Positions 3,903 to 23,800 of a stretch of DNA of 64,000 nt are shown here, piece after piece (the first letter of the stretch is position 1; each line of letters begins with the position of its first letter). A program made the translations under genes and the position numbers. The DNA is from Oopsacas minuta. Lineage: Eukaryota > Animalia > Porifera. The DNA is taken from NCBI GenBank assembly GCA_024704765.1, contig JAKMXF010000066.1, forward strand, positions 927,883 through 991,882. Direction: 5' to 3'. The notes beneath the pieces were generated by a model, which saw only the letters and a list, made by a program, of their open reading frames with translations, ran no database searches and was not told the origin of the DNA.

Positions 3903-4392
3903 CTCAACTGCCCTTCCTTCCTCTCATATTCTACCTCTTTTGTTTGAGGTTGACCGGGGCAATTGTGAAGTGTCTCAGACGTGTCCACTTACAATCAAGC
4001 TACTAAGCTGCAGCCTTGAGAACCTACCGCAGATGATTCATATATTTTATGCGATTATTGTAATACAAATTCCTGTAATAATGATAAAGATATTCGATAA
4101 TATACCCTTCAATATCTTGAGTAATCCGCTAACGTATTGATATCATAATTTAATTATACCATTTCTTTCTATTTACTGAGCTTTACCTTATGATCTTTGC
4201 TTTCTTATTATTTGTTATATGTTTACTTCAAATATGTCTAATCGATATTCATCTTATTTCCTTGCTTTTCTATCCTCTTGTACTTATATTAAATATGCAC
4301 AAACATGAAACTAGATAGTTATACTTTTTCTTAGTCTAAATATATGATATTCCATATGTCTGACAAATATATCTTGCAAATTTATATTGTTG

Positions 4393-5754
4393 ATGGCAAA
4401 TTATATTGAGGTAGACGCATTGAATAGGCAAAAAGAGAATTTTCTTGCTATAGAATCATTATGTGAAACTATTTCCAAATTACAATCAGGTACAAGTTGG
4501 ATTATCATTGGCTACACAAACAAAAGTGATATCAATTCACTTTCCGTATTAAAACAAGGGCAACAATGGAATATTCTGCTACAAATACTTCCTTCTGATC
4601 ATGTATGTTATGTGTATGCAAGGGTAGAGTTTGGGAAATTTCCTGGTTCTTGTTTCCTCATAAAATGGACTGGTGAACAAGTTACTGAAGAAAAGAAAAT
4701 ACATGAAAGCGTTCACGAAAATATCATCATTAGTTTATTCTCCCGTTATGAAAGAATTATTTACGCACATTCACAAGGAAATCTGAATAAACAGGTTGCA
4801 GACTGTTTCAAATCAACACAGACAAGACATGGGAGTATCCGTAGCAGTACCACAATTAGAAAGTCAGGTAAAGTTCCCAAAAGGCATTCAAGTTTTCATC
4901 ATACAAGACATTTAGCACATCCTACATTTTTCTTAAAGCCTACTGAGGATAATTCACAGCTTGGAATTACCAGAACTCACGAAGAACCAATTGGTAAGTT
5001 AAAATCTTAGATTTGGGTTTGCTTATTTCCTTAATGAGTAATATTCTTGATATATTTAGGAGAAACTGCAATACAGATTCTCCGAGCTAAGGTCATTGTT
5101 GTTGGAGATATAGCTGTTGGAAAATCTTCTTTAATCCACACATACATTAATAGATCACCAGAATTCTCCACAGCCAAACCTACATTCCCCGTAGACTATT
5201 TATTCAAGACTGTTAATGTGCAGAAAAATATACACCTGAATTTAGAGATTTGGGATACCATGGGTGAGGAAAGATTCGCCTCTTTAGCCCCTATTTGGTA
5301 TAGATATGCAGCAGCTGCTATACTTGTATACGATAAGACTAATGAAGAATCATTCAAACATATAGAGGATTGGCTGCAAAGAGTCAAAATGTATTCAGAA
5401 CCTCATATCATAGTTCTGGTAGGAAATAAGTCAGATTTGTCGCAGGATGAAGTTATTCCAAAAGCTGAAGGGGTAACATATGCATTTGAAAAAGGTCTTA
5501 TGTTTATTGAGACTAGTACCATGGATGTTGATACGATTGATCAGATATTCTACTTGATGACTAGAAGGCTATTACCTAAATTATTAGAACTGGAAGAAGG
5601 CAGTCAATGCTATATGAGATGTAGAGGCAGGACAATATTGGATTTCGAAGAAGGAAGGGCTCCTCCCAGTCGTTCTGATACAATAGACTTATACTCAAGT
5701 TTCAAACTCACCAATAAACGAACTCATAAGCATTCCAATAAATGTTGTAATTAA
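4393..5754 (+). CDS. ADF-H (coactosin/drebrin-like) domain fused to a Rab5/21/22-like GTPase, about 431 aa, 2 exons
   Basis: Exons 4393-4993 and 5060-5754; GT-AG intron 4994-5059 is phase-1 compatible (G+GA=GGA). ADF-H motifs WIIIGY, YVYARV, FLIKWTGEQV. Rab motifs GDIAVGKSS, WDTMGEERF, LAPIWYRYAAAAILVYD, GNKSD, ETS and C-terminal CCN. Confidence 0.85.
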
Positions 5755-5872
5755 TTCTGTAATTACTATATAAGTGCATAAGGTCTGAATACAAGGTCAT
5801 TGATTTATTATAGTCTTTATCAGTTTTAAACTCTCTATAACTAGTCATTGAATTCCTGTTTGCCTATTAGAT

Positions 5873-8800
5873 ATGAGTAGAATACTACTCTTACTTCTGT
5901 TTATCCATATTCTTATAAGTCTCCTCCTGGTTAATGGACAGATAATATTCGATAATGAACCATACAGAACTGACCTGAATGAAGAAACTCCAATAAACAC
6001 AGTTGTGCTGACAGTATCCGCTATCGACCTGAGTATTACATCTACTACTGGGATGTACTCTATAACATCAGATGAGTTCATCATTGATTCTCTTGAAGGT
6101 TCTGTTAGAACTAATTCGATTATCGATAGAGAGGAATCTGGTACTCCTTTACTGTTCGCATTTGATGTTACTTATGTATCTGATATTGGTAAGCTTATCA
6201 TAGATCAATTGTACTATTGATTATTTCAATGTTCTATTGCTATCAGGCTTATCTTAATTCTTATTTTCTATTTAGGTAATGTTGGCACATCTACCATTAC
6301 AATATCGATAAAAGATATTAACGATAATACTCCCTCCTTCACTAACTCCACTTTCTACATAACTATACCTGAATATACTCCAGTAGATACTATTATCCAC
6401 ATAGCTGTAGCAACAGATGCTGATACTGTGTCAATACAAGAGTCTGTGGATGGAAATGGCATCTCTGTGTTTAATTATACGATTGATTTTGGTAGAGTTC
6501 TGTACTATATTGTAGGAGGAAATGGAAGTAACTATTTTAATATTGATGTGGATTCGGGTGAAATCAAGGTTAGTTTACTAACTCAATTCTTAGAATAATT
6601 TACAGTTTATTGTTTGTATATTTTCTGCTTAGCAACTAAACTTCATAAACAATAGATATTATTATCAGGAATAGTACACCTAACTCCATGATTAGTAGAA
6701 CAGAAGGTCATTAATATATGAGTGATGCAGAACACTGATAAGATGTATTAGTTTCGAATTAGCTATGTATTATTGCATCAACCTTAGTTAGTTATTATAT
6801 TGAACTATTTCATTATTTAGACTATGGTTGGCGATATCGATTTTGATTCTATTCCCTCTCTAACACTTAATATCAGTGCACAAGACGGACCTGGCTTAAC
6901 TGCATACGCCTTATTAGTAATCACTATAGAAGATATCAATGATAATACTCCCATTATTATATATCCTAACTCTTTCTCTATTACACTGAGTGAGGCTGTT
7001 AGTGTAGATCTTATATTGGTAGAGAATATTACTAGTATGGATCTGGATCATGGATTGAATGCTGACGTCACGTAAGTTATATTATCCGTGCTATGTAATG
7101 ATTTTTGTCTATAATATATTACCTTAATTTAATTTAGGTACTCTGTATCAATATCAAATCAATCAGACAGCTTCTCTATAGATCCCACTTCCGGTAGAGT
7201 GGTACTAATATCACCTCTGGACAGAGATTTAGACTCTGTAGTATCATTAACAATACTAGCTACTGATGGAGGTACACTAGCTCTCAGTAGCTCGATTATT
7301 ATTACTATAATATTAACTGATGTAAATGATAACACTCCTACATTCTCTAATGATGTGTTTATGTTTGATTTGATGGAGGATATTGTGAATGGCAGTACTG
7401 TATATGAATTTATTGCTGTTGATAACGATGAAGGTTTGAATGGCACAGTTAGGCAAGTTGTTATACGAAATATAGTATCATAATATGTATTCAAATATGC
7501 CATTTATATTTTCAACAGGAGTATACATACATTTACGATCTATTCAATTTTATAAATTAGCTATAATGTGTTTCTACGTGAAAACCCTTACTGGTCAATC
7601 TATACCAATCAACCTAGACCCAAATGTTACTATAGAAGATGTGAAAGAGTCTATAGAAGAGAGTACAGGTATTCCTGTACTCTCACAGCGTCTGTTATTT
7701 GCCAGTCACGAGCTAGATGATGAATTAACTGTACAAGAGTGTGGGATTGTTTCCGATACTACTGTACACCTGAATCTAGAGCTCAGCGGAGGTGCGAAAA
7801 AGCGCAAAAAGAAGCAATATTCTACACCTAAGAAGAACAAACATAAGAAAAAGAAGGAGAAGTTATTAGCTCTGAAATTCTATAAAGTTGATGATAACGG
7901 TAAAGTTACTCGTCTTCGTAGAGAATGTAATCGTGAGGAGTGTGGAGCTGGTGTATTCATGGCAGCACATTTCGATAGGCAGTACTGCGGGAAATGCGGA
8001 CTTACTTATGTCTTCACAAAGGAAACTTAGTTGAATTTATAGCTTTATAGCTTAGGATTATTAGATTTGACTTTATTAGTTATTCGTTGATTACTATGGT
8101 ATTTCATTAATTGTAGAATTTGTATCCGGTACAGGAGTAGTTCTGATTACGTTATAATTCTGAATAGAAATTTATTTATTCGATTTATTTCGCAGGTATT
8201 CTCTTTCTCATTCACATTTCCACCTATCTCCAGATACTGGTGTACTCTCATTGATACAAACACTAGACAGAGAGACTACTGGAGAATATACCTTTGCTAT
8301 AATTGCATTTGATTTCGGTACTCCAATACCTACCACTGGTAGTGCTATTGTAAATGTAACAGTACTAGATGTTAATGATAATTTTCCTATCTTTAATTCC
8401 AGTTATTTTGAGTTACATATATTGGATACAGAAATTCCTATACTACTCATATCTACCGTTACAGCTCAAGGTATAATATTTGTATTAATATTTGTTTATA
8501 CTATTCGTATTTGCATTAATTATAATTGCTAGATAATGATATCGGGACAAATGGTGATATAACATATTCCTTCACACCAGACAGCACAAATCCATTTGCT
8601 ATAGACTCTATTACAGGAGATATAACGCTTACAAATAGTGTATCATACTCCCTGAGTAATGAATGGCATAACTATACTGTTAATGCTATGGACAGTGCTG
8701 CAGCTAGTGAACAGAGAACTGGCTTTACACAGTTATCTATCCGGGTAGGTTATTATATTTAATAATAATCCTATGGCTAGATGAGATCCTGAGTAACACT

Positions 8801-11800
8801 GTATGTTCTTATAGGTACACGAGCCAGATTCATCTCCTCCTGTCTTCTCTCAGAGTTCATACAACACTACAGTACCTGAGAATACTACTGTTAATACAGT
8901 TATACTGACTGTCACTGCTACTGACATAGACAGAGGTATAAATGGAGATATTAGATATTATATTGTAGAGGAAGATAATGCGTTCTGTTATAACCTCAAT
9001 GAATGTGGTATTGCTGGTACTCTTGGTGTTAATCCTATTACAGGGAATGTGATTGTTAGCTCTCCTCTGGATAGAGATATAAGGTATAGTTTAGTTTGTA
9101 TGTTATATGACGCAATATTTCTAATCATATTTCAATATAGGGAATCTCTATCATTCCAGATAATAGCATATGATGGTGGATACCCTGTAGCAATGAATGA
9201 TACCACTAACGTAACTATTTTCCTGTCAGATTCTCCAGACACTCCTCCACAATTTCAGTCATCTTCTATCAATGCTTCTTTACAAGAGAATATTCTACCA
9301 CCTCACTTTATAACTTCTATAGTAGTTACAGATCCTGATTTAGGAGATGCTGGGCTACTCTCATTGCAGATTGATTACTCTGCATTGGATGGTATACTGT
9401 TTATATTAAATTCTACTACAGGTGAGCTATTATAAGAGATTATATTCTCCTTTAATTATCTTTACTTGTATATGCTATTCAGGTGATCTATACTCTAATT
9501 ATACATTTGATCGTGAAGCAAGTGATTCCTACCAACTTTCAATAATTGCAATAGATTTCGCTCAAATTCCCCTTACTTCCTATCTTCTGGTTAATATTAC
9601 TATTCTAGATCAAAATGATAATTCTCCATTCCTTCTACCCAACTCTTTCAATAGAATTCTTGAAGCTAAGCCAATTGCTACAGTTGTAGATTCAAATCTA
9701 ACAGTACTTGATAACGATATAGGTTTGAATGCTCAACTTTCTTACTCAATCTTGAGTATTTTACCAGAGAATCATTTTACAATAAACAATAATACAGGCC
9801 TCTTGTATACAGATTTTGTATTAGACATCACGGTAATATCTTCCTATAATATTTGTATACTAGTTCAAGATAATACATTGCCTTATTATAATTTATCATT
9901 CTGTATTGAAATACAAGTATTGGATGGCAATTTTAACCCTCCGATATTCTCACGAACTCAGTACAATACTACTTTATTAGAATCTTCTCCTATTGGATTT
10001 GTGTTAATAGATTTGTTGGCAACAGACAGTGATTTCTCTGATGATAATAACCTCATTTTCTATTTTTTAAACTCTACTTTCCCTACCGAATTTAACAGTA
10101 CATTTTCTATTAACAATTTGAATGGCAGCATTAGTTTGATTGGAGAGATAGATCGGGAGTATATTCACGAAATTATTATTCCAGTTATCGCTATAGATCA
10201 ACCGCTATTTGATTTACCTAAATCAGCTGTTACATATGTTACAGTGTATTTAGAAGATGTGAATGAATTCCCTCCTTATTTCAATACTACAAATGCTAGC
10301 ATAATTATATCAGAAGGAGTTCTACCAAATACTCTAATATTCAATTTGTTAGCTGCTGATAATGATGCTGATACTCCTAATAATGAGATTAGATATTCTA
10401 TTGCTCCCTCCCCGTATTCTTATTGCTTCTATGTAAATGAAATCACTGGAAATGTAAGTCTATTTATCTTGTGAGAATATTCGTATTAATTATCTGTTCT
10501 TAATTATTTTGTAGGTATACACTCAGACAGTGTTAGACCGCGAAACAGTACGATCTCTATCTCTTACATTCTATGCTTCAGACTTGGGTATTCCATCCCT
10601 AAACTCTACATTTATTCTATTTATTAACCTTTCAGATATTAATGATAACTCTCCTCAACTCTCAAATACCACTCTATACTCAGCTGAGAATCAGCTGTCT
10701 CCTTATACAATAGATTTCCTACAAACAGTAGATAATGATAGAGGAAATAACGGAACAATATACACAATGTTCTTACAAGATAATTTGTATAATTTCACAC
10801 TGAATAACGTTACAGGAGAGCTAATATCTTTTATAACATTTGATCGCGAAGATACACCATTTTATAACTTAACTGTAGTCCTAATTGATTCAGGAATACC
10901 TCAGTTACAATCTGTTATACACATTATTATAATTGTGACAGATGTTAATGATAATCCACCAGTATTCATACAAGAATCATATAAGGTATTTGTACGAGAG
11001 GACACAACACCAAATACATTCATTATGTCTGTAACAGCTACTGATTATGATATTAACACTAATGCTATTATATCATACACAATTGGTAGTCAAGATTTCT
11101 TTCAGATTGAGTCAGATACTGGGAATGTGAGGTCAATTGAGTTTCTAGACTTTGAATCTGTCACTGAACATGTTCTGCTAGTATACGCTACTGACGGTAT
11201 ATTCATTGAGAACACAACATTGACAGTATATTTGATTGATGTTAATGATAATCCTCCTGTATTCATACTTGGGTACCAGTTTACTATTAAGGAATGTGCT
11301 TCAGCACATACATATCTTGGTTCAATTGAAACTACTGACATAGATTCATATGAGAATAACACATTCACTGAGTATACGACTGATTCACAGTATTTCTCTA
11401 TACATAGTGAGTCCGGTCTGCTTAAAACTTTGCAGGCATTTGATCGAGCTATTCAAAAGCAGTATATTATCACGGTTATAGCGAATAATACATTAGCAGA
11501 GTTCCCGCTATACTCTGTGTTGGATATTTATATCTTTATTGAACCTGTAGCTGATAGTCCAAAATTCTCTGAGCAATTACAAAACATTGAAATTAATGAA
11601 GTTACACAAATCGGTGCTCTTATATACACATTTCAAGTGCTGGATTATCCTCACGATAGTTTAGGTGTTTCATATTCTATTCAGGCTGGGAATATTGATA
11701 ACCAGTTCTATCTTAACAGTTCTACTGGGGGATTGTTTCTACAGGAACAATTATCTTACTATAAACAGCCTCTTTACGCTCTGTCTATTGTTGCTATTGA

Positions 11801-14800
11801 AAACTCTCTATTCAGGAATGCATCTACTATTCTGAATATTTACATTACAAATTATGAACTCAAATTTCCTATATTTCATTATCAAATATCTCTAATGGAT
11901 TCTTATACCGACACACTGCCATTTTTAGAATTCTATCTACACGCTTCTGATCATCCCTTACGGCAAACTGATGCGCTTATGTTTGAAATTACTAGTGGAG
12001 ATATTGATGGAATATTCTCACTTACTAATTCTGGTTCTCTTAGTGTAGTTAATTCTTCGCAGTTACAGCTAACCACTCAACCCACTTCTCTTACAGTCTC
12101 CGTTGCTAATTATTTGGGCCAAACAGCTCAGACTAATGTTACTATTTCAATCAGTTCTATTGCTCTGATAGAACCAGTTATTAATTTCATAATCTTGGAG
12201 AATATAACTGATAATTCTGTTGTTGGGTATATCCCTGTTTATGATAGTATCTCTATCCTTTCTGGAAATGATGATAATATATTTCAAATTATTTCTGGCG
12301 AAATTACTGTTATAAATTCCATAACATTAAATTACGAGCTACAATCTCTCTATACTCTTTCCGTATTCTTACAAAATACAACTCTACAAGTTTATGCAAT
12401 TGTAAATATAGAATTGATTGATGTCAATGAATTCGATTCAGTTTTTGCTTCGGACATGTATTATTTTTCTTTCCAATTCCCCAAAGAATACCAAAATATT
12501 TCATTTCCACTCGCTATTTTTGATAAAGATTCACATGAAGATGATTATTATCTAGACATTGAAGATAATGATAATTTAATTGTTTCTATAAACTCTAATA
12601 GATTTATTATCAACCAAACTGCCACGAATATTACCAAAACTCTAAACATTTCCTTGAAAACAGACAACGCAATAATAGACTTTGCTTACATAATTATTTA
12701 CTTTCAATCTTATGAAACTAACTCAAATCAACCAATTTTTAACAATTCAGTATTTTCATATATTATCAAAGAATCTGATAGCTTCATAGGACAACGTCTT
12801 GACGTCATAACAGCTACAGATGCTGACCAGGGCATATACGGTCAGTTAACCTACGGATTATCAGGTGATCATAATGATAGAGACTTTATTGTCCATCCAT
12901 TTACTGGCCTTATAACTATCAATTTCCCTTTGGATTATGAAACACAGTCTGATTATAACTTAGTATTATACGCCTATGATAGTGTTAGTCCATGTCTATC
13001 TGCTTCTACTCGTATTACTGTTACTGTGTTAGATTCTAATGATCATTCCCCAATATTCCAGCAAGGATTATACTCTAGTGTAATACTTGAGAATTCTACT
13101 GTCAGTACTGAGATATTACAGGTAGTAGCTGATGATGGAGATTCTATATTTGAAGATTTAACTGGTATAACTGGAGATTTCGGGTTAGTAATGTATAATT
13201 TATCCTCAAATAACACGGACTTCTCTATTAATAGTTTAGACGGGATAATATCAATTGCGCTACCATTAGACCGTGAGATGACGTCAGAGTATAATATTAC
13301 TGTAATAGCTACAGACGGAGGAGGTCTGTATGATAAAGCTATCATAATTATAACGTTATTAGATGTTAATGATAATCCTCCTATGTTTGAGAATTCTACC
13401 TTAAGCACTGAGTTATTAGAACATGCAGTGGTTGGTACTGAAATTGGCTTATTTCTTGCTACAGACCCTGATGTAGGGGTTAATGCATTTATTAATTACG
13501 AAATAATAGAAGGAAATGATGGAGGATTATTCTACCTTGATCCTGTAACACAAGCATTGTATTCTAATACATCATTTGATCGTGAGATTGTTGATACATT
13601 AATGATTACGATAGAAGCCAGAGATGCTGGAGAACCTCAGCTAACTAGCCAAGTTAGTATTGAGATTAATATTATTGATATTAATGATAATTCTCCTGAG
13701 TTTTCACACTCTCTTTATAATATTAGCATTATTGAGACTCTGCCTGTTGATAGTATTGTGTTCAATATCACTGCTACTGATCTAGATACTGGGCATAATT
13801 CTATGTTATTTTACTCGATTTTGAGTGGTAATCTGTTCGATATATTTAGCTTAGATCCTCAATCTGGTTCTTTATATCTTGAATCATCACTTGATTATGA
13901 AAGTATTCAGGATTATACACTGATTATACAAGTCACAGATGCTAATGTATTACAGTCCCGTAGTGCTAATACTACTCTATTAATATACGTTATCAATGCT
14001 AATGATAATTTCCCTGTATTTTCCCAGTTAAATTACACAGAATTCATCCCAGAATCAATTCAAGCAGATACATTTATTCTACAAGTTATGGCGTCTGATA
14101 ATGATCAAGGACCAAATGCTAGTTTGTTATATTTTCTAGACTTTACTACAGAACCTTCTACTCAGGGGTTATTCTATATTGAGTATAATACAGGAAGGAT
14201 ATTTGTTGGTAATTATAACTTTGATTTTGAGGCTATTCAAGTGTTTTCTTTTCAAGTTGTCGCTAGCGATTACAGTACTACTCCTCTAACAACTGCTGTA
14301 TTCGTATATATACTGCTTGAAAATGATAATGATAACGTCCCTATATTCCCTCAGAATATTACACAACTATTTATAGAAGAAAATTTAAATTTCCCGAATT
14401 TTATAACAACATTTAACGCAACAGATTTAGATGGAGATTCTTTAGTATACACTCTACACAAATTTACTACAGTATCAGGATGTATACAGCTATGTGGGGA
14501 TGGTTACCAATGTCAAGAATCTATTACTGATCCAAATGATTTATATTATTTCAGTATACTCGAGAATTCAGGTGAATTATATTCAAACACAACATTTGAT
14601 AGAGAATTAAGAGAAAATTATCTATTTATCTTATCAGCAAGTGATCTATTTAACGACCCTTCATATGTCTGTCTATCAATTGATATTATCGATATTAATG
14701 ATAATCCCCCTATACCCGTACAGACAGAATATTACATTGATTTAGGTGAAGAATTGTCTGTTGATGAATTTCTAACTCTACAAGCTACGGATGATGATGG

Positions 14801-17800
14801 AGGACAAAATTCAGATTTATTCTGGATGATCTCATCTATTTCCCCTCCTTATCAAGGATTCTTAATCCACCCTATGATAGGAGCTCTATCCTTGATGTAT
14901 GGACTAGACAGAGAGATTGTATCTTCCTACCAGCTCAATATAACTGTATCTGATAGGGGATTAATTCCTTTACAAGCTATTATCGCGGTTTTTATCAATG
15001 TTACTGATATCAATGATAATGAGCCTTTATTTGCTATTAATAACCAGACTATTGATGTACTAGAGAGCTCTATCCCTGGAGATATCCTTATACTATTAAA
15101 TGCTACAGATAATGATATAGCAGGCAATGCTATGGTAATATACTCACTAACTCCCAGCATATTCTTTGATATCTACCCTGAAACTGGAGAGGTTTATGTA
15201 GCTTCTGAATTGGACTATGAATCTATTACAGTTCATAACCTAATTGTAACAGCAAGGGATAATGGTATACCATCTCTTCACAGTAATATCACTTTAGAAA
15301 TATTAATAATAGACTCTAATGATAATCCACCTGTTTTCTCCTCTGACGTATATAACACTACTCTTATTGAGAATATTATTTATAACGAATCTATAATAAC
15401 TCTAATAGTAACAGATGCTGATACACTGTATGATAATACACATGTTAGTATTCAAATTATACAGATTGAGCCGAATGAACCTAATTTCTATATTTCCGGT
15501 AATGAGTTAATGTTATCTGACAGCTTAGACGCAGAAACAAGTTCAGTGTACAAACTTACAATACAAGTAACTAATGACATTCCTATCAACAATCTCGTTA
15601 CTATGACTACCATATACGTGTATATTTCAGATAAGAATGATAATCTACCTACCTTTACTTCCTCTATCTTCTTTGGATCAATTAACGAAGCCTCTTCTAT
15701 AGGATATTCTATCCTACAAGTTATTGCTATAGATAATGATGTTGATGTTAATAATTCTGAGATTTCATTCTCCTTAGAAATCAATTCTAACTCTTCCTTC
15801 TTCTCGATCAATAGTATATCAGGTGAATTAGAGTTGATAAACAGTGTAGACTTCGAAATAAATGCATTATTCACATTCAATGTAATCGCTACTGATAATG
15901 GATTACCAGCTCTAACCTCTACTTCTATCATCCAAATTACAGTAGTAGACAGTAATGATAATCCTCCTTATTTCACACAAATATTCTCTTTCTATATTCC
16001 AGAGAATACCATAGGATTATTAGGCAATATAACCGGTAGTGATGTAGATAATAATACTATTATTGAGTATGCTATTAGCTCTGCCAGCGTGTATGACGAC
16101 TCTATTGGTATTTACTATGTAATATCCTCTGACATATTCTCTATTGATCCTGTTAGCGGGATGTTAAGCTTGCTACAGGAATTAGATAGAGAATCAGCTG
16201 ATACATATTTAGTTGAGATTACTATTTCAGATTCTATACACTTTACTTCTGTTAATGTTACAGTATATATAACTGATACTAATGATAATACCCCTGTGAC
16301 TGGACAGCCTAGCTATACCCTACAGATATATGAAGGTAATGACGTATTAGATTCTGTATTTATACCAGAGGTAATAGATTTAGATATCGACATTAATGCT
16401 GTGCTTATATTCAAATTCTCATCAAGATATCCTTCTGATGGATTTAGCATAGATATCAATACAGGTGAAGTTCTCGTCGAATTTGTATTGGACAGAGAAA
16501 GCGAGGAGGTTTATACTTTGGAGATAGAGATCACAAATTTGGGTACTCCTGCATTGTTTTCTTACACTGTATTAGATATACAAGTATTAGATGTTAATGA
16601 CAACATTCCTGTGATATCACAACCTAGTTACCAATTCAATATTCTAGAAAATTCTCCTTTTGGCTTGCATATTGAAAATTTTAACGCTACTGATGATGAT
16701 ATTGAGCTCAATGGGGAATTGGAATTCTTCCTAAATGACTTGTCTTTGCCATTTCATGTATTCACGAATGGTAGTCTGTATCTTGATAGTGATATTGATT
16801 ATGAAACTTTACGATTTTATAACTTCTCGTTATTTGTCAGAGATCTAGGCTCACCACCTCTGACAACCTCCTCACAATTATCAATACATATAATAGATAC
16901 AAATGATAATAATCCTATGTTTGAGAATACTCCGTTAACCGTGTCCATTAGCGAATATACCCCTACGCTATCTACTGTATTCACGTTAACTGCTAGTGAT
17001 ATTGATGCCACAACCAATGCAGAATATTATTTCGCGATTAATCAAGGAAATACAGAATTTAAATTCTCTATTGACGAGCTTACAGGAGAAATATTCACGA
17101 TAGATACAATTGATTATGAGTTGACTGAGTCATATGAATTATCTGTGCTGGTTATTGATAGAGGGACACCAACTTTATTCTCAACAGAGCAATTGGAGAT
17201 ACAATTAATTGACGAGAATGATAATATCCCAATGTTTTCTGAATTTGAATATCAATTTTCTATTCCAGAGGATTTTCCTATTCATACATCCATCTATAGA
17301 GTATATGCTAGTGACTTAGATAGCGGATTGAATAGTTTGATTGAATTTTCAATAGATTTGGAGGATATTTTCAGTATTAATTCAACTTCTGGTGAAATAC
17401 AATTACTTCAAGAGTTAAATTTTGAAGAAAAACGCATTTATTCTCTACAAATTACTGCCAAAGATAATGGAAATCCTCAGCAATCATCTTCAGCTTATCT
17501 ACATTTACAGCTATTGGATGTTAATGAATATCCTCCATATTTCCCTTTGACAGAAGTTGTAATTTTCATTTCTAACTCTATCTTAATTGGATCACAAATA
17601 TTCCAAACAACTGCGTACGATTTAGATTATTATGGAACTCCTATTTCATATGAATTACTATCAAACCCCCTCAATCAGTATATTAATATTAACTCACAAG
17701 ATGGTGATATATACCTAGAGAATTTATTTTCTGGTTTGACCGGTAATTATTCTCTAATAATTCAAGCCTCTGACGGTGATTACTACTCACAAATGTCTTT

Positions 17801-20800
17801 GAAAATTGTCCTACATGATGCTAATGCATTTTCTCTATCATTCAGTCAACCTTCCTTCTATTTTTTAATACCAGATAACTCTAATGTAGGGAGTATAGTA
17901 GCTGACGTCACTGGTTATAATATTGATATATTTGATATTTCTACTAACACTGAATCCAGTCAATTATTCTCAATAACAGCTGATGGGGATATTATATTGC
18001 TGGATTTTCTAGATCCACAGACTGTCTATTCCTCTAATTTATTCGCTATGAACTCACAAGACACGATACAGACTGTAATTACTATTGAAGTATTTGCAAC
18101 ACAGAATAATCCCCCGATATTCTCATCATTGAATTACTATGTACATCTGTCAGAAGCTTTACCAATAGCTACAACCTTCCTAACAATATATGCTATAGAT
18201 AATGACGTCACTGATCAAGGTGTAAGCATTTCTTATACGATTTCCGATGGAGATGAGTTTGCTTTGTTTTCTATTGACAGTCAAACTGGTAGACTTTCAA
18301 TAGCCGAGAAAATTGACAGAGAAATAACTCCACTATTTAATCTTACTATACAAGCTGCTGGTAATGGAATAGGTATGACGTATGTAGTAATTATTATTGA
18401 TGACGTTAATGATAATGCTCCAGTATTCTCAGAAGACGTTTACCGTGCTACTGTCGTATCCGATATACCTGCAGGTACTTTGATACTACAAGCTATAGCG
18501 AATGATAATGATGCGGGAAGGAACAGTGACATATCTTATGCAATTGTATCACAGCCCATCCCCAGCTTGTTTGCTATAGATCCTTACAGCGGTGATATCA
18601 GACTGAATAGTAGTCTTATTGTGTACGATTACAAGAGCTATGCTTTCTACATTTCAGCAACAGATAACGGTCTGCCTTTACGACTAACTACAGAAATACA
18701 GGTGTATTTTACTATTGATCATCCCAACCTATATGATCCTGTGTTCACTACTCTATCTACTAATAGTACTATCCCTGAGACAACTCAAGATGGAACTCTT
18801 ATAGCAATATTCTATGCATTTGATCTTGATACTAACACCAGTGATGGAGTATATTACTCTTTATCTAATTATGAAAACCTTCCATTCTCACTGAGTAATA
18901 AGGGAGAGTTATACTTGACAAGTACGCTAGATTATCTGCAAGCTATAGTGTACAGGTTTGTAATTACAGCAACAGATAGTGGTACTCCTACAAGAAATTC
19001 GACGTTAGATTTTGCAGTATTCGTTGAGGATATCAACAACCATCTTCCTATCTTCTCACAGGATTCATACGAAATGATTCTCTCTGAGAACTATCAAATA
19101 CAAACTCCCTTTATAACAATCTCTGCTACAGATTTGGATGCAACCTCTATAACATATATAATCTCCCTAAATAGCTATATAGAGAATGGCGAGGCTATCT
19201 TCTCTATTAGCTCTGATACAGGAGTTATGTCGTTAGCTATTCCATTAGATTACGAAACCCTGGTGACACATGAATTGCTGATCACTGCAAGAGATCAGGG
19301 CTACTCTATTACTCAATTCAACAGCGTAACGCTTACAGTTATGGTACAAAATGTGAATGATAATCCTCCTATATTTTCCCCCACCACAAGCATTACAGCA
19401 ATCGTACCTAGACTATCTATGGCTGGTATATTTGTTAGCACAGTATCTGCTACTGATTTGGATAGCGTATCTATTCTATACTCTATTCTGTCTGGGAATG
19501 GAGATGGTTTGTTTGCTGTTGACGGGGAAACTGGCGATGTTACACTAGCTAGAGATGTTGGGGCATTTGCTGATAGTTTGTACAATGTGCAGTTGTTAGC
19601 TTTTGATGGAGAGTTGAGTTCTACTGGCTTATTACAGATTGAGATTAGTGATAATGCAAGTTATTGCTATGGTAAGTTTGCAGTACATTTACTACTCAGA
19701 TGAACATTGGGTAAATTCAATTTTATGATTATCTGACAAGGTGGCCGAGTGGTTAAGGCGATGGACTGCTAATCCATTGGGCTCTGCCCGCATGGGTTCG
19801 AATCCCATCTTTGTCGTAAACCTTTTGCTCGGCTTCAGAATAACCCCAAATATATTGTAATTATGAAACTAAGGATGCTACTTTTTCTACTTTTCTTATT
19901 TTCTAATTTAGATGGCTTATGTACTGATGTGTTACCTAGCGTGATCTGTACTACAGCTGATTGTACTACTTGTCCTCTTGACTTTGTAAGTTCTGGTATT
20001 TTTCATGTACTTCAATGTTTCTTTTATCTTTTGTTTCCCTCTTAGATCTTATCAACTACATCTACTTTTTGCTTCCTTTATACCTGCTTCTCTTCAGATG
20101 AGGTACAATAGACTATCATAGCTCTAACATTATACTGTAATTGTTTGTTTATATATTTCATTTAGTATCTTTGTGGAGAACAACAACCAGGCTGTATATC
20201 CTACTCATTACAATGCAATGGAGTTTGTAGTTTAAACTACTCGTTATGTGCTGCAGACAATCTCTGTTATCCAAACACTATTTCATCATTACCATGTGAT
20301 AATCAGAACACCATATGTCTTAATGGTTATATTCTAGTTCAGCTTTCTGATCAATCTCGTGTATGTACTCACCCTTCAGATCTACCAGCTATGGGTCAGA
20401 TCTGCAATACCCTCGGGAAAGTATATTGTGATGAGATTGATTCTTGTCAGAATATTCAAAATAACCCGTCTCTATGTCAACTGTGTTCTTCCCAAGAATT
20501 TCAGTGTCCAGACACAAATGAGTGTGTATCTTCTTCCAAAATGTGTTGTAGTACTAGTGACTATTTCTGTAACATAACAGATTCATGTCTATCAGCTGAT
20601 CTCTCATGTCCTCCTGTATCCTCTAATATAGCACCAACAATTCCTTCTAAAGCTATTCTACTTCCCTCCAGCTCCCTAGGATCCGTCATAGGATTACTAT
20701 TAGGCGATGGAACAGCTGTAGGAGTAGACACTCAGATGGAAGAGGTTGCGATTGCTATTATCTGTCAGTTCCCTGTAGATAATCTATCAGGTTATTGGCA

Positions 20801-23800
20801 GTATATAAAGTGTAGAGATGGTCCTACAGATGTGTATGGCGCCTGTAGTGTACTAGAGTATCCGTGGATAGATTTACCAGTCACAACCTCAATAGATAAT
20901 GCGTTTATCCTCCCTCCCAATTATCGTATTAGATTTGTCCGTATGCAGACAGTACTTGAGGGTAGTGTATGGTTACGAGCTCATCTCTGGGACGGATTTA
21001 ATGAAGCTGTAGAGACTGATTCATTGTCTGTAGTACGTGAGGCGGATCCTCATTTTGCATTTCTTCCTCCATTCGAATCTAATTCTGCTTTCAGTCAGGA
21101 ATATTTATATTTTGTTTCTATTTTCAATCCGGTTACTTCTTTCCCAGCTTTTATATCCCCCAATATAGTATCATTCCCAGATATAGAAGAAGATTATTCT
21201 AGTTTACAGAATAATGGTGTGTTGTTGAGTGAGCTGTTGGGTGGAGTGTACTCTCCCAATCTGTATGTGATTAGCACTACAGTTGTATTGGGTAAGTACA
21301 CAAATACTTTGCAATCAATTCTTCATTATATAACTTTACTTCTGTTTAGGTCTCCCGCCATCAGAAGCTACAGATATACAGAATAGTTTACCATCATCTT
21401 CACTGACATCTTATTTCAGCTCTGTAGTATCCACTAACATAATCAGAAGTAGGAGATTATCTGTTACTGCTGGATTCTTGTTAGCTAGTGTTAATGATGA
21501 CCAAGGGGTGTGGCAGGTAATTTATAGCTACTGTAGGTTGTTCTTATACCAGAAGATAAATAATAATTGTATCCTCTAATTAGGTGACAGCTACTGGTAG
21601 ACAATCAGACTGGTACCCGATCACTTCAATACTCGACAATACAAACCAATTATTATATATACCACTAGAATCAAGAGTTAGATTCATACCGAATGAACAC
21701 ACACACAGTACTGCTACAATATCGATACATCCATGGGATGGTACTAGCCAGGGCTTATCAATGCAAACTGTAACAATTCGTGACGTAACCTATCAAGTAG
21801 CTAATGTGTTACCTACAGCATTCGCATTAGGAGATGCTAATAGCATGTCACTACATATAATCAGTGCCCCAGATAATCCAGTAGTTATTATTAATGAGTT
21901 ATTACTACCTACTATACCATATTTTATACAATATCGGAGAGATAATGTGTTTGTTATTGAGTTAGAGATGAGTGTTGATATGTTTAAGCAACAGCAGGAT
22001 TTGTTAAGTAATTATTTTGCTGTTTTATTCCACTCAACTGTAAGCATTTTATACTTTGAGCCTCTGGCTAGTATCAGGTAAGTTTGCACAATAATAGCAT
22101 TTACAAGTACTTTATTATTGCAATATTTTAGGTGTTTAGCTAGCTTCCGAGTAGAAGAACTACAGCTATCACTCTCTGATATATCTACTGAGCTAGAGCT
22201 AAGTAAAGATGTGTTAGTTAGCTTAGGATTTAATATAACACAAGTTACACAAGGTAAGTTAATTAAATATAACAAATAATGAGGTAATTGTTTATACTTG
22301 TATCATATAATCAATTAGATACATTTGTGGGACAGGGACATGGCTGCTTTGATTCCTCTCTGTATGCTCCTAACACCGGAGAATCTGCTGGAGTAATAGC
22401 TAATACTAACGGATATGATGGAGATGATGATATTATGGGATTAGCAGTAGTTCAGTATACCGGTGATATGCATGGAATATGGCAATACTATAGGTCAGAT
22501 GTACCTCCAAGTGTATGTAACTCTCTGGTAGTTAACTGGATAACATTACCTGATTCTATTTCTGAGACGAATGCTTTCCTGCTACGTCCATCAGATTGTG
22601 TTAGATTCTCTCCTCACCCTCAATCATACTGGCTAATCAGTACAGCTCCAACTCTAACAGTGAAGTTATGGGATATTTCTGTAGGGAGTATTACACAGGA
22701 GAATGATATGTATCATGCTAATACAGATCCTTATACTACAACTGTACACTCTACCATTAATCCTATAGGTTTGTTAGTTATATAAACTTACGTAGATACA
22801 CGTCATCTTAACTTTTTATATTCACAGGGCTATTCAGTACAGATACTATACGAGTAATAGCACACAGACAAGACTGTACTGGATCAGCTGATTCTAATAA
22901 TGTGTATGATGCATGCTGTATCTGTGGAGGGTCTGGTACTACCTGTATGGGATGTAAGACTAATGTATCTATAGCAGTACAGTATGATACATGTCGTGTG
23001 TGTGGAGGAGATGATTCTACTTGTGCAGGATGTGATTTAGTACCATTCTCTTATTCACAAGTTGATGAGGGAAACATTTGTAGGTAAGAACGTTTTATAT
23101 CAGATCTATCCTATGAGATTTATATTATTAATATTTTAGGTCTGATTCATCCAACCTCGCTCCTGGTCAAGTAACAACATACTTTGACTGTGAAGATACT
23201 CCCTTTGGGCTAGCACTTGTAGATGATTGTAATGCTTGTACAGAGGGAGATTCAGTTAAGGAATACAATTATCTAAAGTGAGTTATTCCCATTCATATTA
23301 CCTTTAAATGAATATTTAATTAACACTATTATACTCATTAATAATACAAACTCTATATAGCAACACTCTCAGTAAATGGAATAATAATAACAGTATTATT
23401 TAACCTTTCTTTTATGACTGTGAATATGGGTCTGTCATCAGCTGATTGTTTCCAAGTTTCAGCCATCAAACTATACACATCATCCGGACAACCATCTGGT
23501 TGTAATGGTATTTCACCTCCTTGTATGAAATCTACAATCTCTTCGTTAGTATTTTCCTGCCATGGCTTGCGACCTAACGTCCATATTTCATACAGCGTCA
23601 TTCCAAATGCCCAAACATCCGATTTCTCTGAAAACCTATTATATAAAACAGACTCAGGCGCGCTCCAACGTAAAGGTATCCTCCCGCCTTTAGATCTGTA
23701 GTAATCATCTGATCTTAGGTCTCTTGACATACCGAAATCAGCCACTCGACAAGACATATCATTAGCTATTAGGATATTCCTTGCTGCCAAATCACGATGG

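Follow-up and report, generated by a model that had tools for sequence, protein, structure and literature searches.

Ordinary Rab GTPases reach the cytoskeleton through effectors that they recruit, such as myosin adaptors, SPIRE, and fascin. The nearest described concept to the gene reported here is that of the large Rab GTPases with EF-hand N-termini, Rab44, Rab45/RASEF, and Rab46/CRACR2A, in which EF-hands and a coiled coil form the N-terminal part of the protein (PMC8303950). The likeness lies in a functional N-terminal module that precedes a prenylated Rab domain in the same chain and provides it with a sensor or effector of its own, whereas these large Rabs contain no ADF-H domain and belong to other lineages. 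On the actin side, Abp1/HIP-55, drebrin, and coactosin carry the same class of ADF-H domain, by sequence and fold, as the protein described here, and Abp1 links F-actin to the endocytic machinery (PMC2169459). Unlike our protein, this group reaches membranes via SH3 or other protein contacts, with no covalently attached lipidated GTPase. On the GTPase side, Rab5, RABF2b (Ara7), and Rab22 are the best-scoring relatives of the G domain, but by a small margin over Rab2, Rab11, and Rab21, and the Rab described here differs from them in an altered G3 motif and switch I and in a 205-aa N-terminal extension.

The gene in question lies at approximately 932,275-933,636 of contig JAKMXF010000066.1 of Oopsacas minuta (GCA_024704765.1), within the stretch of 64,000 nucleotides that was analyzed as a whole (positions 927,883 to 991,882, hereafter the window). 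It joins an ADF-H domain to a Rab in one reading frame, and the only Pfam match in the N-terminal 200 aa of its product is Cofilin_ADF, which sets it apart from Rab44, Rab45, and Rab46.

Gene structure and expression

Two exons are separated by a phase-1 intron at 4994-5059 with GTAAGT at its 5′ end and TTTAG at its 3′ end, which splits the codon of Gly201 as G|GA (Table 1). The spliced coding sequence of 1296 nt encodes a protein of 431 aa (49.5 kDa, pI 8.3). In exon 2, the earliest in-frame Met is that of the WDTMGEE motif (aa 268), inside the G domain, so exon 2 is unable to make a Rab alone.

The stretch is present in four runs from one sample of one study, three of which are DNA-like and colinear with the window. 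The fourth, X4, includes a contig of 631 nt at a depth of 679 that covers 4461-4992 and then 5059-5157, skipping 66 nt with GT..AG ends, and the binned X4 depths correspond to exon-only cover with zero depth over the intron. Further X4 contigs span 5128-5796, beyond both AATAAA sites (one of them covers 5501-5796), and in the gene that follows, an 87-nt GT-AG intron is likewise missing from X4. X4 is a single run that is stored as contigs and carries no RNA label on record; from the empty intron, the additional GT-AG skip just mentioned, and a foreign leader shared by two start codons (see below), we infer that it is RNA. An alternative intron of 45 nt, with an acceptor at 5038 that is also in frame, was ruled out since the RNA shows the 66-nt skip. 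The ADF-H-Rab fusion is thus confirmed as a real, in-frame, and expressed gene. A preliminary description made from the letters alone had proposed that a 66-nt GT-AG intron joins the two domains, had named the 4993/5060 junction as one to seek in RNA, and had considered the fusion obligatory for want of a usable start in the Rab exon. The sequence and the X4 contig, which joins 4992/3 to 5059/60 with nothing over the intron, bear out the intron and its junction, and the Rab exons of the orthologs likewise lack a start of their own, in line with an obligatory fusion.

Searches of protein collections with exon 1, with the Rab exon, and with one mixed profile assembled from pieces yielded no full-length protein of the window subfamily and returned only ORF-level halves from other assemblies, and the neighboring 5209-aa GenBank model has no Ras hit. 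Since these searches, which ought to have detected it, turned up no high-identity protein with either exon, the public O. minuta proteome seems to lack the gene, as judged from queries with exon pieces.

Table 1. Features of the ADF-H-Rab gene and its surroundings (window coordinates).
Feature	Position	Strand	Evidence
Apparent spliced-leader trans-splice site directly before the start codon; dinucleotide TG, not AG	4391..4392	+	X4 contig
Start codon ATG	4393	+	Read directly from sequence
Exon 1, 601 nt (start codon, ADF-H domain, most of linker)	4393..4993	+	Sequence; RNA contigs 4392-4992
ADF-H domain core, aa 27-133	4471..4791	+	Pfam PF00241; AlphaFold2; Foldseek
Lys102, long helix after W-x-G-E motif	4696..4698	+	Residue alignment
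Basic Ser/Thr/His-rich linker, aa 136-205	4798..4993; continues 5060-5073	+	pI, dN/dS
Phase-1 GT-AG intron, 66 nt	4994..5059	+	Sequence; skipped in X4 contig
Exon 2 (linker end, Rab G domain, hypervariable tail, CCN, stop)	5060..5754	+	Sequence; RNA contigs 5059-5796
Rab G domain, aa 206-378	5074..5592	+	Pfam Ras
G1 GDIAVGKS	5104-5127	+	Rab motif
Switch-I Thr	within 5176-5199	+	Rab G2 motif
G3 WDTMGEE	5251-5271	+	Rab motif
G4 GNKSD	5422-5436	+	Rab motif
G5 ETST	5509-5520	+	Rab motif
3′ end region, AATAAA at 5713 and 5737; transcript contig end ~5796	5713..5796	+	Sequence, X4 contigs
C-terminal Cys-Cys-Asn, double-cysteine Rab geranylgeranylation-type motif	5743..5751	+	Sequence
Stop codon TAA	5752-5754	+	Sequence

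Orthologs and selection

Exon 1 retrieved two close relatives at the ORF level in an exhaustive HMMER search, and the Rab exon retrieved three more, the ortholog contigs coming from six ENA assemblies and one Logan run and representing at least 5 distinct relatives. The gene order kinesin (−), ADF-H (+), Rab (+), cadherin, eS31 is kept in at least 5 other glass-sponge assemblies. Every ortholog offers an in-frame phase-1 donor at the corresponding position (mostly GTAAGT, with GTGAGA or GTATTG in the two remotest orthologs) together with a YAG acceptor, and the homologous intron measures 295-1304 nt as against 66 nt in the window. The Rab frames of the orthologs have no start of their own, their first in-frame ATG lying 50-140 codons into the G domain, and the proteins modeled with predicted splicing are 429-440 aa long and can be aligned over their full length.

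The closer pairs give dN/dS values of 0.06-0.09 in the ADF-H domain and 0.08-0.14 in the G domain, compared with 0.46-0.66 in the linker. Both domains are under strong purifying selection and therefore functional, and the fusion is old within the group. The G3 motif reads DTMGEE or DTIGEE in 5 of the 6 distinct sequences and DTLGQE in the most divergent one, and the C-termini are CCN, CCS, CCK, or CC in the same proportion, the most divergent ortholog (L003) being modeled to end in ...CNF. One ortholog has GHKSD in G4.

In one relative (L002), a second copy of the window-type Rab exon was observed at 11977-12651, 4 kb downstream of the first and 65% identical to it. It is preceded by a 692-aa ORF (9540-11618) without Pfam hits, and could be a duplicated copy that is paired with another N-terminal part.

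The ADF-H domain and linker

The Cofilin_ADF profile (Pfam PF00241) matches exon 1 at 34.9 bits, compared with a cut-off of 22.4, over profile positions 5-119 of 125, and the folded domain extends over aa 7-144 with a long N-terminal helix. The domain is divergent, with an identity of only 18-30% to canonical ADF-H and A1-type rows, and its only sequence matches among solved structures are drebrin-like HIP-55 (1x67) and drebrin (5y1z), the nearest of them at E = 0.018. An AlphaFold2 model of aa 1-150, built from a 33-row alignment, has a mean pLDDT of 84.3 and a pTM of 0.77. The best 50 Foldseek matches listed for this model are all ADF-H domains (drebrin, cofilin, Abp1p, coactosin, GMF, and twinfilin; TM 0.6-0.8), with drebrin 5y1z first and cofilin, Abp1p (1hqz), and coactosin (1t2l) also at the top, at probability 1.0 and TM 0.66-0.80. 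Lys102 aligns with the Lys of "VRK" in HIP-55, is at least 90% conserved in our ADF-H alignment (A4), and is what we take to be the equivalent of the coactosin Lys required for F-actin binding; judged by alignment, it would be a conserved basic residue of the actin-contact type on the long helix.

The linker has a pI of 10.2 in the window gene and of 9.8-10.2 across all orthologs, and contains the small conserved motifs TRHGSIR, KRHSS, and FFL; the conserved forms include RHGS and KRH(G/S)S. These ~70 aa are probably disordered and look phosphorylatable. A coactosin/drebrin-type ADF-H domain, a basic linker, and a prenylatable-type CCN C-terminus had all been proposed beforehand. The first is upheld by the Pfam score above threshold, the AlphaFold model, and the Foldseek matches, the second by a pI near 10, and the third can be read in the sequence itself.

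A further candidate, an ENA protein of 2888 aa (P0003) that matched the ADF-H query at E = 9e-20, was considered as a giant ADF-H repeat protein and judged spurious: it is a tandem-repeat protein in which 19 per-repeat scores of −2 to 5 bits were summed to this E-value.

The Rab domain

The Pfam Ras match has an E-value of 1.1e-40, and a 53-aa tail ending in CCN follows the G domain. G1, the G2 Thr, G4, and G5 are intact. In place of the G3/RabF2 motif WDTAGQE the protein has WDTMGEE, which retains DxxG and replaces the catalytic Gln with Glu. The RabF motifs of Pereira-Leal and Seabra are reportedly IGVDF, RFRSIT, YYRGA, and LVYDIT; their counterparts here, FPVDY, RFASLA, WYRYA, and LVYDKT, are recognizable and altered, with only LVYDKT close. 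Given FPVDY in switch I/RabF1 together with DTMGEE, the regulators and effectors of this protein may differ from those of any known Rab.

The best 60 solved-structure matches shown are all Rabs or Ypt proteins, and not Ras, Rho, Arf, or Ran. With the single sequence as query, the solved structures score 120.7 bits for RABF2b/Ara7, ~113-114 for Rab5A-C, and 113.9 for Rab22A; with the ortholog profile, RABF2b reaches 158, Rab5A-C 142-146, and Rab22A 141 bits as against 142 for Rab2A and 136 for Rab11. The lead of Rab5/RABF2b over Rab2/Rab22/Rab11 amounts to ~12-16 bits. We take this to mean that the window Rab may lean towards Rab5, which is a weakly supported tendency and not a placement. The label "Rab5-group-like" of the preliminary description thus agrees with the best solved-structure scores, but the margin is small and no tree groups the window Rab with Rab5; for the same two reasons, an endosomal location remains a guess.

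A wider glass-sponge family

The exon 1 search also matched full-length proteins of 375-438 aa, each encoded by a single ORF and containing a Cofilin_ADF as well as a Ras domain, and a profile of seven such proteins retrieved ~48 clusters (at 90% identity) with both domains, from a profile search that was not exhaustive and followed an exon 1 search of low sensitivity. The genes of these proteins are intronless and stand in tandem arrays, for example four copies within 9 kb (L004). In O. minuta itself, four consecutive genes of this type, KAI6659150-KAI6659153 (UniProt A0AAV7KE63, A0AAV7KCI0, A0AAV7KCF0, and A0AAV7KE56), lie ~331 kb upstream of the window on the same contig. They have been automatically named "Rab-26 isoform X2," "ADF-H domain-containing protein," and "Rab-30," of which "Rab-30" and "Rab-26" are misnomers for ADF-H-Rab paralogs. 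A complete Trinity ORF of the ADF-H-Rab type is also present in Vazella pourtalesii (EukProt EP00800_P021333). The two species-named members are glass sponges, most other members are ENA sequences, and the loci inspected share the O. minuta gene order or the array layout. As far as these searches show, the pairing is confined to glass sponges, with members elsewhere possible.

The preliminary description knew of no described ADF-H-Rab protein. In the literature this still holds: our searches for the pairing found no describing paper, the genome papers of O. minuta and Aphrocallistes contain no mention of Rab, ADF, or cofilin, and a Rab survey has no ADF, cofilin, or domain-fusion terms. The ESM Atlas look-alikes of an array paralog are only plain Ras/Rab clusters, with EF-hand large Rabs below useful scores. 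Unique, however, the pairing is not: it is already in the databases, UniProt included, as a sizeable glass-sponge family of ~48 clusters, four annotated copies of which share the contig of the window.

Array-type proteins resemble the window protein in the order of ADF-H domain, linker, Rab, and Cys-containing tail within 350-445 aa. They differ in being single-exon and tandem, mostly with a canonical WDTAGQE and with tails such as CQRCNN or CCST, whereas the window gene has an intron, a single copy, a conserved neighborhood, DT(M/I)GEE, and CC(X) tails. The array-type ADF-H domains score ~40-50 bits against that of the window, which places them among the best non-ortholog matches and level with multi-ADF-H proteins. 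The window Rab scores 100-126 bits against generic Rabs and an estimated 85-95 against array-type Rabs (whole-protein score minus ADF-H score), and the array-type Rab domain scores best against Rab30, Rab5, and Rab26. In a 58-row maximum-likelihood tree with a weak backbone, the window type forms one clade (100/99) and the array type with neighboring stand-alone Rabs another (100/100) that is not joined to it; this tree lacked named Rab5 and Rab22 sequences, for which the solved-structure ranking was used instead. Monophyly of window and array Rabs is not rejected by the AU test (p 0.275). These comparisons are open both to one ancient fusion followed by divergence and to a second fusion or domain swap. 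The window gene is, in either case, a second, divergent subfamily of an undescribed but database-visible glass-sponge family.

Plain Rab genes of 212-234 aa adjoin the ADF-H-Rab arrays at three loci (L004, L005, and L014), and similar stand-alone Rabs fall inside the array-type clade of the tree, which suggests either that some copies have lost their ADF-H part or that the ancestral free Rab persists. The array at L004 also lies near an Ank-Roc-COR-kinase (LRRK-like) gene.

Spliced leader and neighboring genes

In X4 contigs, the foreign letters AAAACTTACA precede position 4392, and the near-identical letters AAAAAACTTAC precede 5869, ahead of the ATG of the next gene. The window does not contain the leader 11-mer AAAACTTACAG, so no leader gene lies within it. 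Such a leader is consistent with the spliced-leader trans-splicing reported in glass sponges (PMC10282587). At the ADF-H-Rab gene it appears to be joined right at the ATG, after ...TATTGTTG (4380-4395), with TG instead of an AG acceptor, a join known from 10 loose letters of one X4 contig; the orthologs have ordinary TAG/CAG acceptors 4-14 nt upstream of the ATG. Another observation from X4 is a contig at ~40% of exon depth (207 vs. 517) that runs unbroken from 3836 across the leader site, so that many ADF-H-Rab transcripts may stay un-trans-spliced.

The next gene is cadherin-like, with its ATG at 5873. Here the same leader is attached at a TTAG acceptor of canonical type (5869-5870), which lies ~75 nt past the end of the ADF-H-Rab transcript contig (~5796), an operon-like spacing. 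GenBank models this region (~5873-23281) as one 5209-aa product with cadherin repeats and ubiquitin-like and Ribosomal_S27 (eS31) domains. In the public annotation, the cadherin model thus seems to have absorbed a nested or neighboring eS31 gene.

A candidate membrane-actin tether

The reading that we favor, with some reserve, is that the 431-aa protein is a kind of large Rab in which an ADF-H domain as actin end and a prenylated Rab as membrane end would together make a switchable membrane-actin tether. The CCN tail would be doubly geranylgeranylated and anchor the protein on a vesicle or endosome-like membrane, where its residence would be controlled by GEF, GAP, GDI, and nucleotide state, and the ADF-H end would bind the sides of actin filaments as Abp1, drebrin, and coactosin do. 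A single chain would thereby couple membrane identity to actin, a task for which ordinary Rabs need recruited effectors, and the basic linker with its RHGS and KRH(G/S)S motifs would give reach and perhaps a point of kinase control. The Gln-to-Glu change in G3 would not necessarily abolish hydrolysis and would probably alter the timing of the switch.

The strongest competing explanation, which we nevertheless regard as unlikely, accepts the fusion as real and concerns its ADF-H domain, which would no longer bind actin and would serve as a partner-binding or autoinhibitory module for the switch regions, another protein, or Arp2/3. GMF, an ADF-H-fold protein, acts on Arp2/3, and GMF folds are among the structural matches of the window domain. 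The top structural match, 5y1z, is a nonactin complex of the drebrin ADF-H domain with ZMYND8; a drebrin ADF-H domain can therefore also be a protein-interaction surface, and actin binding is not guaranteed here. The low identity to actin-binding ADF-H domains fits this explanation too, and the dN/dS of 0.06-0.09 would be equally well explained by any specific partner. On the other hand, the nearest solved sequence relatives (HIP-55/mAbp1 and drebrin) are F-actin binders, the helix Lys and the W-x-G-E core are retained, and this analysis gave no sign of another partner.

Somewhat less probable still is that the Rab is a pseudo-switch, fixed in one nucleotide state, which would do no more than hold the ADF-H domain permanently at a membrane through its lipid. 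Five of the 6 distinct orthologs depart at two positions from WDTAGQE, which is near-universal in Rabs (Met or Ile for Ala, Glu for Gln), one ortholog carries GHKSD in G4, and switch I is altered, all of which would suit a disabled GTPase, but there is no damage to the P-loop, the switch-I Thr, NKSD, or ETS(T), the most divergent ortholog keeps its Gln, and the G domain is under strong purifying selection. TBC RabGAPs, moreover, supply a Gln in trans. In Ras, the corresponding change Q61E raises intrinsic GTPase activity, so that hydrolysis becomes faster and not slower (PMC2987813, PMC10515638), and the Glu in G3 need not inactivate the window switch.

That one protein has been misread from two neighboring genes, from a chimeric RNA contig, or from a pseudogene in decay is very improbable and largely refuted, for although the junction comes from a single contig of a single run, the type of which the record does not state, and protein collections hold no full-length member of the subfamily, the intron has zero depth between exons at 679 on both sides, its GTAAGT and TAG signals are canonical, the same phase-1 junction is available in every ortholog with no Rab-exon start in any, dN/dS is ~0.1, and the intronless paralogs prove the architecture. 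The pairing itself is beyond doubt, given ~48 clusters of intronless single-ORF ADF-H-Rab proteins that include the Vazella transcript.

Returning to the switchable tether, no link between membrane and actin could be simpler than a Rab that carries its own ADF-H domain, which would amount to a natural experiment in effector-free coupling. A broader proposal, which we hold only tentatively and consider doubtful on balance, is that glass sponges evolved and multiplied Rabs with their own actin-binding effector, in at least 2 subfamilies with dozens of paralogs, and that the window gene is the conserved single-copy member, with Rab5/RABF2b as its best matches and a retuned (Gln-to-Glu) switch. 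Glass-sponge tissue is a syncytium, and if the proposal is true, membrane identity would be wired to actin without adaptors, possibly as an adaptation for organizing and moving membranes in a giant syncytium. With its expansion into arrays alongside the conserved single-copy gene, and with no members seen outside glass sponges in these searches, the pairing is in any case a candidate for a lineage-specific cell-biological innovation.
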